A stretch of DNA of 62,920 nt, the filler included, from Reticulomyxa filosa (lineage: Eukaryota; Protista; Foraminifera), in the NCBI GenBank assembly GCA_000512085.1. It is 18 parts of 18 records of this genome, joined end to end, with 100 filler letters (N's around TTAATTAATTAA, not from the genome) between each part and the next. Parts side by side here need not be neighbours in the genome. Positions count along the whole stretch, not along the records: positions 12,450 to 25,421 come from ASPP01008223.1; 17 more parts are not named here. One strand, written 5' to 3'. The stretch's first letter is position 1. Every line of letters starts with the position of its first letter. The position numbers and the translations under genes are program-made. Shown here in pieces: positions 9,362 to 25,421 of the stretch. Below the pieces are notes generated by a model. It was not told the DNA's origin and searched no databases. It saw only the letters and a list, made by a program, of their open reading frames with translations.

Positions 9362-10395
9362 ACAATGACAATATCATGGAATACGTTTGTCAGCTACTAT
9401 CTCAGACACACATGGAAATCGAGAATGTGGAAGTGTGTGCAATGTCCACAATTCTGTAACAGCGTAAGAAGAGTGTCTTTGATGCAATTAAAAAATTCAC
9501 GTATACGCATTTTTAAAAGCACATTAATAATCGACCCAATGCAATCCAATGAAAGTGCAAATACAAAAATGCCAATGAATATTTTCAAATCTACATCGAG
9601 CATGTTATCAACATCATGTGCACGAATCATCAAATCAAAATGCAGGTAAATAACAATGATTGAAAGATTTAATTGAAGAAAAAAAAATGTTCATAAAAAA
9701 AAAGGGAGGTTTACGTATATCAAGAATAATAAGGAGGATGAGAGATTGTATATATGGTTGATTTGATTTAAGATGGATTTTTTTTTAAAAAAACAAAAAC
9801 ATAGTGACTTAGCGGGTTAGCAAGTATATCACCATATTGTTGGTGCAGAACAAAATTGCATGTGTTGAAGCAATGGCTTGGATGCGGATGTTGGACTTTG
9901 CAAAAATTCAGAATCACAATTCGTTTGGGTTTGTATACGATATGTTGTAAACGTGGAATTGCTGCAACTTTATATAGTATTGGTGTAAAATTCAGTGTTC
10001 GTGACAATGTGTTCATTTGACAGTGGTGTAAATATCATCTCGATTACATCCTCAGCTACTTTTCACTCGCCAATGCACAAATCGGTTTGTAATAACATTT
10101 TGCAAATATTATCCAATATTGCGATGTTAGTTTCTTTTTTTTTACAACATTTTTTTCTTAAATACAAACAAACAAAAAATAAATAAATAGATCTTACGAC
10201 ATAGCGCAGTTTACATTGGACATGGACGGACGAGGACGATTTGACAAATGGACAGGCCAGTTGCGATCGCAGTCGACAAAAAGTCAGTCGTCACGACATG
10301 GCTTAGCACCTGCCTTATGGTGATAGAAGCGCTGTTTGCGCAAATGAGGATGTGTGAAACACAACTGACGAGCAATCGAATTGCAAGTCAGTGGT
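9362..10395 (+). pseudogene. Unidentified degraded coding sequence
   Basis: Exon-like, higher-GC blocks between polyA introns, but every frame is interrupted by stops. No motif recognised. Confidence 0.25.
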
Positions 10396-12654: not shown

Positions 12655-14165
12655 ATGTCACAAGAATCCTCTCAACCTCATAATCCAACGTTACAAAAGC
12701 AACCAAGCTCATTGAATAAATTTTGGGAAAGTGTAGAGAAAGCGACAAAAACAGCAGGAAAGTCAATTTCTCACGGCTATGTAAAAGCAAAGCAGTATTC
12801 AGTCTCAAAAATGGGCGTGGAGCCAACAGCAGAGTCGCACGAGGTGACCCGTGCATTTGAAGTTAGTCATTCGGAATGTCCCAATGTTTTTGCCCCTTTT
12901 TTTTTTTTATGAGCTTGTCTTTTGTTATTTTGTGCACGTTTCCTCCAAAACACTTTCTAGGCATTGAAACTGACGAAAGTGGAGATAACTTCATTGGCTG
13001 CTGCTTGTCGAGGAATGTATCAAGCTAGAGCAGGTAATTGAGCAAGTGTAGCAATTTATTGTGTTTGTTGGCAATGGGATGGGAGGGGGGGGGGGGAGCA
13101 AATTGGTTCAGTGTTCATTGCCCCTTTTTTTTTTTTTTTTGTTCAATGCACAACAAAATCTTTTTTTTTGGGGGGGGGGATGGATGTTAGAATATTCCCG
13201 TCAAAATGTAAGCTTCAGCGAAGCAGCAGAGCAAATGAAAGTAAGCGAAGACGATCGGTTGGGGAGTTTTACCAAAGAATTGGGCAAAGTGCTGATGTCA
13301 ATGGATGTTAGTTGTTGTTGTCCGCCAGTATTGTGTAGTATGTTACATATATGTGTGTGTGTGCGTAAATGTATGGAAGCTCACAAAAAAAGAACCACAT
13401 GCAAAGTAGCTTCCCCCTTTTTTTTTTTTAAAAAAAAAAAAAAGATGAGTGAACAAGAGTATTTAAATCAATTGCTAAACCAGTTGGTAATTCCCTTGGA
13501 ACGTTTTCGTGATGAAGATATCGAACAAGTAAGCGCGCTGAAATGGAAATACACAAACGCAAAGACGGAGTATGACTACGCCGTGAACAACGTGATCAAA
13601 GCCAACAAGCCAGACACAACACCCGAAAAATTGCAAGACCTAAAGCAAAAGCGCGACGCCAAAGAGTCGGAATTGAATAACTTGCGATCTGAATTCATTG
13701 TAAGTTACGCTTTGTTTTCACTTTGCCATTGTGATTCTTCTTTGGTATATCAAACACAACAACAACAATTGGAAAGATTTGGCTTTGGTTGTTTGTTTGT
13801 TTGTCCATTTTGTAACGTATAGACATCAGTCAACAAACTTGAAGAAAAAAAATAATGAACTGCTTGCCAATGCGCAACGCTTTTATGGGTCATTGCTGAC
13901 ATATGCTAAACACATATCTGGTATTGTCCACGACAATCCCATTGTCCCCAAATCCACGAATGGCTTGGAACACAACAGCTATCTCACGTTTCAAGACGAA
14001 AATGACAGAAAGGATATCGATTTCTCGTCCCGCAATATTTATACGCCCGTTGACACCATACACGACAGCAGCGCCAATCATACACATGTCTATTTGGAAG
14101 GTGTCCCCATTTCTGATACTGAAACAGCTGATAGCAATGGAAGGAAAAATATGATCAATCAGTGA
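12655..14165 (+). CDS. BAR-domain-like protein (about 5 exons)
   Basis: Exons at about 12655-12859, 12961-13033, 13190-13306, 13444-13699 and 13823-14165. Amphipathic helices with QLVIPLERFRDEDI...KYTNAKTEYD are typical of BAR domains. Confidence 0.65.
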
Positions 14166-19417: not shown

Positions 19418-20203
19418 ATGGCACAGATGTCTGTATTAACAGATTTCTACAATACGCCACGACAACATCCCAAAGCTTTTTTTATTGGGTTTGGTGTTGG
19501 TTTATTTGCTTGTGTACTGGCATACAACGGCCGTAGATGCTGGACTGGACCAAAGAAGACACCAAATGGCGATAAGGTGAATAAGCTACTTGCAGTTGCG
19601 TTTATGATCATGGAACAGAGTCCAGCATCCATGTTTTCCACAATTCGTTCTGAGACCAGATACAGAGCGGATGAGGAGGTTAAAACAGAACTGTTGCCTC
19701 AAACGCGTGTGATGTCCAAAGACTACATGGAACTAGATATGAAAAATGATCCAATGTTGAACAATATTTTTTTTGGCACTAATGTCCAGTCTTCAAAAGT
19801 ACTGGACCTTAAATGGTATAACAATGTATGTATAACTTTTGAGGATGTGCAAGGAGGCGGCTACGTTACGCTGTATGGAAAATGCCAATGTTGTGATAAC
19901 GAGACGAGTATTGCCCGGCTCAAAGATAAATGGAAATCTTTTTTTGTAAACGCCGATTATCGCACAGATTTTCTATTGTTGCACTGTACAATTGAATTTA
20001 TGGAAATTGTTTCTTATAAGTATAAATTTTTTTCCGTCAGAAAGGATTGGAAACCATTTGTATTGAAAAAAGGTAAAATGCTATTTCTTGAGTTTATGAT
20101 ATTTACAACACAAATATCGCCACTCTCTGGGTTTTTTTTTAATTTTAAGCCAACATACTTTCAAAAAAAATAATTTAAACAGATGCCAACAAATGGATTT
20201 TAG
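19418..20203 (+). CDS. Membrane-anchored pyridoxamine 5'-phosphate oxidase-like FMN-binding split-barrel protein (general stress protein 26-like)
   Basis: N-terminal TM segment (FFIGFGVGLFACVLAY), then PQTRVM, IFFGTNVQSSKV.DL...NVCITF, GYVTLYG and KWKSFF. Probable intron at about 20072-20181 and a short last exon. Confidence 0.7.
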
Positions 20204-23214: not shown

Positions 23215-25421
23215 ATGGCAGTGTCTCAAGTAATTGCGACGCATACGTATACAACAAAAGATGAAGGACATTTATCATTCAAAGCAGGGGACGTGATTGA
23301 CGTGGTGCAAGAAGACAAAAGTGGTTGGTGGGTGGGTAAAGTGAAGAACAAGCAGGGGTATTTCCCAGTGACATACGTGAAGAAATATGACGGAGCAAAA
23401 AAGAGTGCAGCAAAGAGCGGAACAACAAAAAAGCCAGCAGCAAAGAAGCAAGAGACAGCGAAACAAGCAACGAAAGAGAAGGATACGTACAAGGAAAGCC
23501 TCTTGACTGACACAGAAAAAAGCACAGCAGCATACATGGAAATGTCTTCAGACATGGATGTGACAACATCCACCAATCAAAAGACTGACCCAAATGCTGA
23601 AATGTATTATTATAGTGAGGTGTTGAATCTCAAATTTAACCCCAATGCAAAGTCTCGTTTTGGTATGCCCTAATTTTTTTTTTTTTTTTTTAAAAAAAAA
23701 ATGCATGAAATTGAAAAACAAAACAAAAAAAAAAGGTGTGACGGCACATTATATGTCGATATGCGCAATCATTGCAAGTTTTTTTTTGGGCACGAGTGCA
23801 TTTGCATGGGGAGGTGCAGACGCCAGTCCAGCGTTGGAGGGGAATAAGTCATTGATCACTGGTTGTGGGGTCTATTGTTTTTTTTTAGGTTTACGTATCG
23901 TATTTGTAATTTTATGTAATGGGAAGAGGAGGAAGGAGGAATATACTCTCTCTTTGATATTAATAAACAATATGCGACTTACCAATTTTTTTTTTTTTTT
24001 TTTTTGATTGGGTGTGATTCCGGGTTCTCCCTCTCCTGACAGCACCACTAATGGCCATCTTCGAATATCGATACGGACAAAGACGAAACAAAGGAGGTTT
24101 GCCTTTGCGTGGAATGCTATATCTATCGGTCGGAATACTCCCTTACTTTACCATTGTCACAGCCTTGGTAGGCGGGATGTGGACCATCACCGCAATGTTC
24201 GATATTTTGGCGTGGTTTGTTAAGTATTACAAACAATGCAAATAAAAAAAAGAAACATATATATATATATGTACATATGCATATATATATGTATATATGC
24301 ATATATATATATGTGTATATATGCATATATAATAAATCTATGAAGAAAAAAGAAGAATATGTAATGGAAACGGGTAACAAAGAAAAAGAATACGAGAAAG
24401 AATATAAAGAGAGATGGAAGCAATATGTGATGTATTCCAACTATGTAAAATGGATGAAAGGGTGGTGGAAAGAGGTTCGTCAGCAATCGAAAGTTCGAAG
24501 ATATGTGTTTGTCTTTGCCTATATGTTGTTTACAATAATCTTTGTGAGTCTGCAATGTGCACATTATGAAAGCGTCGCATCGGAGGACAATGCAAGTGGG
24601 TCAAAATACAGCAGCACATTGCATAGTAAGAATGCGGGGTCGTTGACCCCAGCGCAAAAGTCAATGGCGGAGTTGTACGACGACAACGGCGGGAGGATTT
24701 ATGGCAGTTGGTATCCAATGGCAAAGATGTTTGGCAATCTGTGCGACATCAACTGCGCCTTTATCGTATTGCCCGTGTGTCGATCGTTTATTGCGTCGCT
24801 GTACAACATATCGACGAATCAAAGGATGTCTTCGCGGGCCGTTCGTTTTTGTCTGAGTTTCATGCCATTGGACAAAGCCATGCAATTTCACAAATTATGT
24901 GCACTGTTGTCAGCACTGGGCGCAGTGCTGCACACATGGGCACATTACAATCACTACTCGCAAGTGCCCAAGACCTATCAAACTGTGTTCGGACCCACGG
25001 TGTGGATATCCGGAGTCCTCCTGCTCGTCGCCATGCAACTGCTGTACAGCACCTCCTCCGAGTCCGTCCGCCGAGGCAAGTTTGAAATGTTTTGGTACAC
25101 CCATCACGTGTTCGTCGTGTTCTTTGCCGCATTGCTGTTCCACGGACGCAACTCGTGGAATCCAAACTTTTGGAAGTGGTTCCTAGTCCCCGGCTCGCTC
25201 TACGTCATCGAGCGCGTCACCAGGGAGATCAAGGCCGCCAAGCCCGTCGGGCTCATCAGCGTCACGCACATGAACAACAAGTTCGTTAAAATGTTTTGTC
25301 TACAACTTGAAAAGACGGGGCCCATTCGACAGCATCAAGAAGGACAGTATCTCTTCTTAAACTGTCCCATCATCACACGATTTCAATGGCACCCATTTAC
25401 TATTTCGTCGCCACCAGAGCA
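23215..25421 (+). CDS. NADPH oxidase fusion protein: SH3 + p22phox-like 4-TM module + NOX (gp91phox-like) ferric-reductase TM and FAD-binding domains; 3' truncated by contig end
   Basis: Exons 23215-23662, 23736-23888, 24043-24218 and 24346-25421 join in frame through GT-AG introns (phases 1, 1, 0). SH3: LSFKAGDVIDVVQEDKSGWWVG...GYFPVTYV. p22phox-like: GVYCFFLAPLMAIFEYRYGQRRNKG...RGMLYL...ILAWFKKEEY. NOX: LPVCR, heme His pairs FHK-x12-H and YTHH-x11-HG, FAD motif QWHPFTISS. Confidence 0.88.

Follow-up and report, generated by a model that had tools for sequence, protein, structure and literature searches.

A predicted single-chain NADPH oxidase of Reticulomyxa filosa that combines an SH3 domain, a p22phox-like module and a NOX core

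Reticulomyxa filosa is a naked freshwater foraminifer belonging to the Rhizaria. In a 62,920-nucleotide stretch of joined genome parts of this organism (GCA_000512085.1; hereafter, the window), positions 23215-25421, which lie at the end of the part taken from contig ASPP01008223.1, very probably represent the 5′ two-thirds of one gene for an NADPH oxidase (NOX) of unusual composition. Its three parts are an N-terminal SH3 domain, a module of four transmembrane (TM) helices that is homologous to p22phox, the membrane partner of animal NOX2, and a NOX2-like catalytic core. We regard this as the best explanation of the locus overall, including the mechanism proposed below.

An initial annotation, made by eye, had proposed four exons. 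These and all six splice sites were present where it had placed them, with GT-AG borders and agreeing phases. Throughout the analysis, either individual exons or naturally contiguous homologs were tested; the profile designated A2 was built from 20 full-length fused proteins, none of which is an annotated Reticulomyxa protein. The features of the gene are as follows.

23215-23662, plus strand: exon 1, with the start ATG, the SH3 domain (approximately 23236-23370), a Lys-rich linker and a conserved 'NLKFNPNAKSRF(G)' lead-in to TM1; ends in phase 1
23663-23735, plus strand: intron 1, 73 nt, GTATGC...AG, GC content 0.16; its retention brings an in-frame TAA
23736-23888, plus strand: exon 2, p22phox-like TM1, extracellular loop and first half of TM2; A2 positions 131-208
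23889-24042, plus strand: intron 2, 154 nt, GTTTAC...AG
24043-24218, plus strand: exon 3, remainder of TM2, 'FEYRYGQRR', 'PLRG', TM3 and TM4, ending in 'ILAWF'; A2 positions 179-244
24219-24345, plus strand: intron 3, 127 nt, GTTAAG...AG, GC content 0.17; holds TAA 24243-24245 and ATG 24340-24342
24346-25421 (contig end), plus strand: exon 4, conserved 'KKEEY' linker, pre-TM1 segment, six NOX TM helices and the start of the flavin adenine dinucleotide (FAD) domain; A2 positions 225-560
24886-24945, plus strand: TM3 of the NOX core, 'FHK...LHTWAH', two heme-ligand His 14 residues apart and a His aligned with NOX2 His119
25099-25146, plus strand: TM5 of the NOX core, 'THH...FHG', second heme His pair, 13 residues apart, aligned with human NOX2
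25390-25401, plus strand: HPFT FAD-binding motif, aligned with human NOX2

Exons 1-3 add up to 777 nt (448+153+176), which places exon 4 in phase 0. The introns have a GC content of 0.16-0.34 versus 0.42-0.47 in the exons, and retention of any one of the three introduces an in-frame stop codon. All 617 visible codons of the window copy were open. Most of intron 3 (24255-24335) is a microsatellite of the TATATATG/CATATA type (TATATG type).

Identity of the three parts

The N-terminal SH3 domain predicted by the initial annotation was confirmed by the Pfam SH3_1 model, which matched residues 8-52 of the exon 1 peptide with 51.1 bits against a cut-off of 22.9 (E 9.9e-14); SH3_2 (44 bits) and SH3_9 (42.4 bits) matched exon 1 as well. 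Exon 4 encodes a NOX core, as shown by matches to Ferric_reduct (E 4e-16) and FAD_binding_8 (E 2e-7), and human NOX2 (E 2.7e-26) ranked first among its PDB matches and NOX5 (E 7.6e-24) second. Both heme His pairs and the HPFT motif align with those of human NOX2, in accordance with the NOX2-like character claimed for this part. His101, His119, Thr178 and Gly179 of NOX2 are diagnostic of NOX enzymes that generate reactive oxygen species (ROS), as opposed to metalloreductases (Zhang et al. 2013, PMC3591440). In the window, the counterparts of His101, His119 and Gly179 are identical and that of Thr178 is Ser ('WISGV'). The NAD_binding_6 domain is present downstream of the core in two R. filosa paralogs (L001 and L002, described below) and in the relatives.

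For the middle module, a phmmer search with the exon 3 peptide found many full-length SH3-NOX proteins, which it matched in their middle part (P0065, E 5.9e-12; P0073, E 1.3e-8), and the exon 2 peptide matched only P0015, a deposited model from the paralogous loci. We then compared two module alignments with the PDB: A1, made from 18 full-length relatives, and A4, made independently from 46 other proteins. With both profiles, human p22phox chains were the only significant PDB matches, and these extended across all four helices. A1 matched chains 8gz3_A and 7u8g_B with E 2.7e-9 and 8kei_A with 1.3e-7 over p22phox residues 5-140, the next match having an E-value of 6.3; A4 reached 4.1e-15, with the next match at 0.33, and together the two profiles covered residues 4-140. 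The three anchor points that had been matched to p22phox by eye coincide with columns of the HMMER alignment. In A1 and A4, the module has a Glu and an Arg that are invariant or nearly so and that align with p22phox Glu53 and Arg90; in the window, they are found in 'FEYRYG' (E) and 'PLRG' (R). Glu53 and Arg90 are core residues of p22phox; their missense mutations cause chronic granulomatous disease and are predicted to destabilize p22 and to disrupt its association with NOX2 (Noreng et al., PMC9568551). An AlphaFold2 model of the module of P0065 (pLDDT, the predicted local distance difference test, 82.8) consisted of four long helices, and a Foldseek search with this model placed three p22phox chains on top (probability 1.00, TM-score 0.55-0.66), the next match having an E-value of 0.42. 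Judged by profile E-values and by the modeled fold, the middle module is demonstrably a p22phox homolog.

The module might instead be a generic four-helix bundle, either convergent or derived from an unrelated tetraspan protein such as TVP18 or the COPI-associated protein. Three observations point in that direction: single-exon peptides found no match in the family and structure collections, as detailed below; weak Pfam matches to COPI_assoc and Cg6151-P were obtained for 3 of 18 members; and a shape search of the ESM Atlas returned only generic helical proteins. A feature search of the same atlas gave no usable match. However, two independent profiles lead to p22phox alone, more than eight orders of magnitude ahead of the next match, Glu53 and Arg90 are kept, p22phox occupies the top three Foldseek places, and the module is fused to the very enzyme that p22phox is known to partner. 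This alternative is largely refuted, and we consider it scarcely tenable.

Pfam does contain a p22phox family, Cytochrom_B558a (PF05038, gathering cut-off 25 bits), and 6 of the 18 relatives matched it below this threshold (best E 3.3e-4; P0039, 17.1 bits). Since single sequences score below the cut-off, databases do not display a p22 domain in these proteins.

Probable joining of the exons into one chain

When A2 was compared with all forward-frame fragments of the window, it matched four collinear pieces in three frames (profile positions 4-108, 131-208, 179-244 and 225-560), located at the four exons; the first piece corresponds to 23233-23583. The match ranges overlap and extend in part into intron-derived fragments. 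At least two further loci of R. filosa are paralogs, L001 (ASPP01000523, 9618-13093, complete) and L002 (ASPP01028363, 438-3001). The same profile was also collinear over both, and L001 has the same kind of start as exon 1. All three introns are common to L001, L002 and the window in position and phase, with interiors that could not be aligned, and the intron 3 donor GTT[AG]AG is kept in the three copies.

The sequences around intron 3 bear on whether the NOX exon belongs to the upstream exons. The codon directly before the exon 4 acceptor is a TAG stop in L002; L001 has a TAA two codons upstream of the acceptor. Neither paralog has an ATG before the conserved 'KEEYEPE...' segment, and the first ATG of L002 lies beyond TM1. 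With a stop in front and no start codon, the NOX exon of these paralogs cannot begin a gene. The junctions predicted in the window restore features of the family: at junction 1/2, the split codon yields the near-invariant Gly of 'TRFG'; at junction 2/3, the TM2 spacing G-x-Y-x4-[GA]-x6-E-x3-G is exactly that of the family consensus; and junction 3/4, 'AWF|KKEEY', corresponds to an unbroken 'AWWKKEEY' in P0065, while its counterpart 'AWSKKETY' ('AWSKKETYERKK') lies inside a single exon of the metagenomic relative L003 (1752-2156).

In relatives, the single chain was observed directly. In P0065, from a Tara Oceans scaffold (L005, 1710-4055), a single open reading frame (ORF) of 781 codons runs without interruption through SH3, the four-TM module and the NOX TM domain, and the fusion in this case is therefore independent of splicing. 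Complete-ORF transcripts that include the module are P0187 (998 aa) and P0143 (Mucochytrium quahogii), both from the Marine Microbial Eukaryote Transcriptome Sequencing Project (MMETSP), and P0105, which is derived from a transcriptome shotgun assembly and is complete in EukProt. In addition, many contigs of 2.7-3.1 kb contain ORFs of 830-950 codons, consistent with an mRNA origin. The single chain that the initial annotation had proposed is thus borne out by the relatives, and comparison with relatives and paralogs suggests that the window exons are joined into one chain by splicing.

The deposited gene models give a different picture. Exon 4 is 100% identical to P0001, an NCBI entry named 'NADPH oxidase [Reticulomyxa filosa]' that starts at the in-frame ATG 24340 and ends in a mis-spliced tail. 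NCBI splits L001 and L002 into three gene models each; one model within these loci, P0015, retains intron 2 sequence and owes its name, 'myosin IB heavy chain', to its SH3 domain. The ORF track hides the link between the exons, as had been noted earlier. On the face of these models, the locus could consist of two adjacent genes, one for an SH3-p22-like protein that ends at TAA 24243-24245 and another for a NOX that starts at ATG 24340, perhaps driven by an internal promoter and perhaps in addition to the fusion. The ATG, its use in P0001, and the fact that fused splicing in R. filosa is deduced by comparison all speak for such an arrangement. However, the stop and the ATG are just 94 nt apart, this ATG is absent from L001 and L002, whose NOX exon follows a stop and has no start codon, junction 3/4 rebuilds a motif that is contiguous elsewhere, the deposited models are unreliable in the paralogs as well, and relatives contain the fusion in one ORF. 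We consider two separate genes improbable.

Alternatively, the architecture might be real in the family while the copy in the window, as a decaying or silent paralog, yields no protein. The presence of at least three paralogs in R. filosa and the incompleteness of this copy at the contig edge are compatible with silencing, but its 617 open codons and canonical splice sites, the intact heme, FAD and p22 core residues, and differences from L001 and L002 that appear mostly synonymous by eye (uncounted) make it quite improbable that the locus is inactive.

The intron content of the family is variable at other positions. L001 (11212-11313) and L002 (1203-1328) contain an extra intron inside the NOX TM domain, at a point where the window ORF is continuous (approximately 24780-24790, 'PVCR|SFIA'), an indication that recent paralogs have lost or gained an intron. 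L003 has other intron positions again, with the entire p22 module within one exon.

Proposed architecture and comparison with known oxidases

We propose that the spliced product is a single-chain flavocytochrome b558, which would consist of the SH3 domain, a linker, the four-helix p22 module, a linker of approximately 50 residues containing 'KKEEY', the six-helix NOX domain, and the FAD and NADPH domains. Like p22phox on NOX1-4 in trans, the p22 module would pack on the NOX TM domain, but in cis, and would thereby stabilize the heme-bearing core. Electrons from NADPH would pass through FAD and the two hemes to O2. p22phox has four helices, has both termini in the cytosol, and binds TM3-TM5 of NOX2 through its TM1 and TM4 (PMC9568551). 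With cytosolic p22 termini and a cytosolic NOX N-terminus, a chain of 4+6 helices fits the known topology and would leave the SH3 domain, the linker and the dehydrogenase domain in the cytosol. The topological coherence put forward in the initial annotation is consistent with this arrangement.

Several results weigh against the reading of the locus as a single-chain oxidase gene. The window copy is cut at 25421, at A2 position 560 of about 855, so that the rest of its FAD domain and its NADPH domain lie beyond the contig. The joining of the exons in R. filosa itself is inferred from comparison, and the start of P0001 at ATG 24340 leaves room for a shorter, NOX-only transcript. Taken singly, the exon 2 and exon 3 peptides matched no Pfam family; in phmmer searches of the PDB, exon 3 found nothing and exon 2 found one chance-level complex I chain (E 0.12). 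No single family member exceeded the Cytochrom_B558a cut-off, and the window exons, scanned one by one, did not match this family. Packing was addressed by a two-chain complex prediction for the NOX TM domain of P0103 (Amorphochlora amoebiformis) and its own p22 module, which scored 0.48 compared with 0.00 for the best control, with at least 92% of contacts agreeing between runs and a partner pLDDT of 72. A score of 0.48 was attained by 51 of 78 solved complexes and by 2 of 108 mismatches, and scores of 0.60 or lower comprised 5 of the 78 solved complexes and all four passing mismatches. This prediction supports packing in cis weakly and may in part reproduce the solved NOX2-p22 complex.

The p22 module of the fused protein lacks the C-terminal proline-rich tail by which animal p22phox docks the tandem SH3 of p47phox or NOXO1; none is present in the window, and the linker between TM4 and the NOX domain contains no PxxP there. 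In animals, the proline-rich region (PRR) is on p22 and the SH3 domain on p47phox, whereas in the fused family the SH3 domain is on the membrane subunit itself. With no PRR of the p22 type present, the most likely ligand of the SH3 domain is a proline-rich partner bound in trans, with the animal SH3/PRR polarity reversed; this partner would be a cytosolic regulator or a cytoskeletal anchor that the SH3 domain recruits. The idea of SH3 as a built-in adaptor holds insofar as the domain is on the NOX chain, but the domain is not a simple substitute for p47phox docking on p22. Docking in cis on a proline-rich stretch after TM4 was considered as a general rule and rejected, given that a class I/II motif was found in this linker in just 4 of 41 SH3-bearing relatives.

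About half of the members have a PxxP between SH3 and TM1. Proline-rich motifs occur right after the SH3 domain in L001 ('RMPPVPP', approximately 9800-9900) and L003 ('RPKPPPAPEKK', approximately 1060-1110), with none in the window; these may act as an intramolecular SH3 ligand that just some members possess.

The closest known system is animal flavocytochrome b558 (NOX2/gp91phox with p22phox/CYBA; PDB 8GZ3 and 7U8G), which has the same two membrane components: a NOX2-like core without EF-hands and a four-TM partner that is homologous over helices 1-4 and keeps Glu53 and Arg90. The animal complex is a heterodimer, whereas the R. filosa-type protein is one polypeptide with p22 at its N-terminal end. 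Fungal NoxA with the p22phox homolog NoxD/Pro41, NoxR and Bem1 is likewise a Ca-independent NOX that is regulated by subunits and has a small tetraspan partner, NoxD being likened here by description, and the SH3-containing adaptor Bem1 takes part in the fungal system (PMC9421330). The fungal parts are, however, encoded by separate genes, and the Melampsora Nox falls outside the fused clade described below. An SH3 domain on the NOX chain is also known from Naegleria gruberi, where it is contained in the NADPH-binding domain at the C-terminus (model M17, Zhang et al. 2013, PMC3591440). P0129 and P0160 similarly have SH3 near the C-terminus; such proteins differ from the fused family in the position of SH3 and in having no p22 module, and rows of this type (e.g., P0129) are outside the fused clade. 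In DUOX1, an extra N-terminal TM helix (M0/S0) occupies the oxidase face that p22 occupies on NOX2 (PMC9568551). Unlike the fused p22 module, this is a single helix leading to a peroxidase-like ectodomain in a Ca/EF-hand-regulated enzyme, and it is not a p22 homolog.

Distribution, origin and published record

We determined how widespread the architecture is from the 150 representatives of 50%-identity clusters that best matched the NOX exon. The module was upstream of the NOX core in 58 of the 71 representatives with at least 750 aa, at least 63 of the 50%-identity clusters contained the module-NOX fusion, and an SH3 domain was upstream in 41 of the 69 representatives with a near-complete module. 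Named members include Bigelowiella natans, Amorphochlora amoebiformis, a Cercozoa metagenome-assembled genome, Mucochytrium quahogii and Rhodelphis marinus (P0116). An A2 search for named full-length relatives, used for names and not for counts, returned 8 proteins among 8000 word-sharing candidates. The initial annotation had held that this protist hard-wires the parts into one chain. The three parts are indeed in one chain, but the arrangement is not peculiar to R. filosa, as it occurs in Rhizaria, in a labyrinthulomycete and in Rhodelphis.

The N-terminal region varies among members. P0143 of the labyrinthulomycete M. quahogii has the p22 module without an SH3 domain; P0105 has two tandem SH3 domains before the module, reminiscent of the bis-SH3 of p47phox; and P0116 has approximately 275 extra N-terminal residues ahead of SH3.

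In Plasmodiophora brassicae (CDSF01000144; L006, 4008-4844), unannotated same-strand exons match the SH3 and p22 part of A2 (positions 3-250), and these are collinear with and upstream of the annotated 579-aa NOX PBRA_003057 (5001-7097). Because these exons precede it, the PBRA_003057 gene model is probably truncated at its N-terminus.

In a FastTree phylogeny of NOX cores, all 63 module-bearing rows fell into one clade of 83 with an SH-like support of 99, and none of the 18 rows outside this clade had the module. Most of the 20 module-less rows inside the clade have short or cut N-termini. As the tree was a quick one, rooted on one fungal sequence, it suggests, but does not prove, a single origin of the fused clade.

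Published surveys give a different range for p22phox. The origin of p22phox was described as unknown and SH3 in NOX was seen only within the Naegleria C-terminal domain by Zhang et al. (2013, PMC3591440); the earliest p22phox-like gene was placed in choanoflagellates, with a Dictyostelium candidate doubted, by Kawahara and Lambeth (2007, PMC2121648); and p22phox was considered restricted to opisthokonts by Massari et al. (2022, PMC9421330). Judged by the sequences reported here, p22phox is much older and more widespread than these surveys hold, with a homolog in Rhizaria, a labyrinthulomycete stramenopile and Rhodelphis that is in all cases covalently joined to the enzyme. Among openly searchable full-text papers, we found none that connects p22phox to Rhizaria, labyrinthulomycetes or Rhodelphis and none on a fusion of p22 with NOX, although a mention in closed-access literature is possible. 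The architecture has been concealed by annotations: in R. filosa, the genes are divided among two or three models each, one of them under the myosin name, and in Plasmodiophora the model is probably cut short.

The fusion is a natural 'Rosetta stone' that independently confirms the pairing of p22 and NOX. A naturally obligate 1:1 single-chain cytochrome b558 would be a practical tool for structural and biochemical work, with no need for co-expression, and the location of SH3 on the membrane subunit suggests a cytosolic regulator yet to be discovered. A more far-reaching reading, which we consider possible but rather unlikely, is that a single-chain (SH3-)p22phox-NOX was ancestral to all p22-dependent oxidases and that gene fission gave rise to the free p22phox/NoxD/CybA proteins that animals, fungi and amoebae have. 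If true, the question raised in the literature about the origin of p22phox would be answered, and the pairing of p22 with NOX would belong close to the root of eukaryotes and not in opisthokonts. A search with A4 for stand-alone p22-like proteins of 78-248 aa found none in a limited word-index candidate set, which is a weak guide to their existence.

Other ORF fragments in the window presumably are exons of neighboring genes. The fragment at 14932-15294 matches the Lon protease lid domain (E 1e-11), and two others gave matches under the cut-off, namely a BAR-like segment at 13445-13819 (E 6e-5) and a weak pyridoxamine-phosphate-oxidase-like match at 19418-20170 (E 3e-4).

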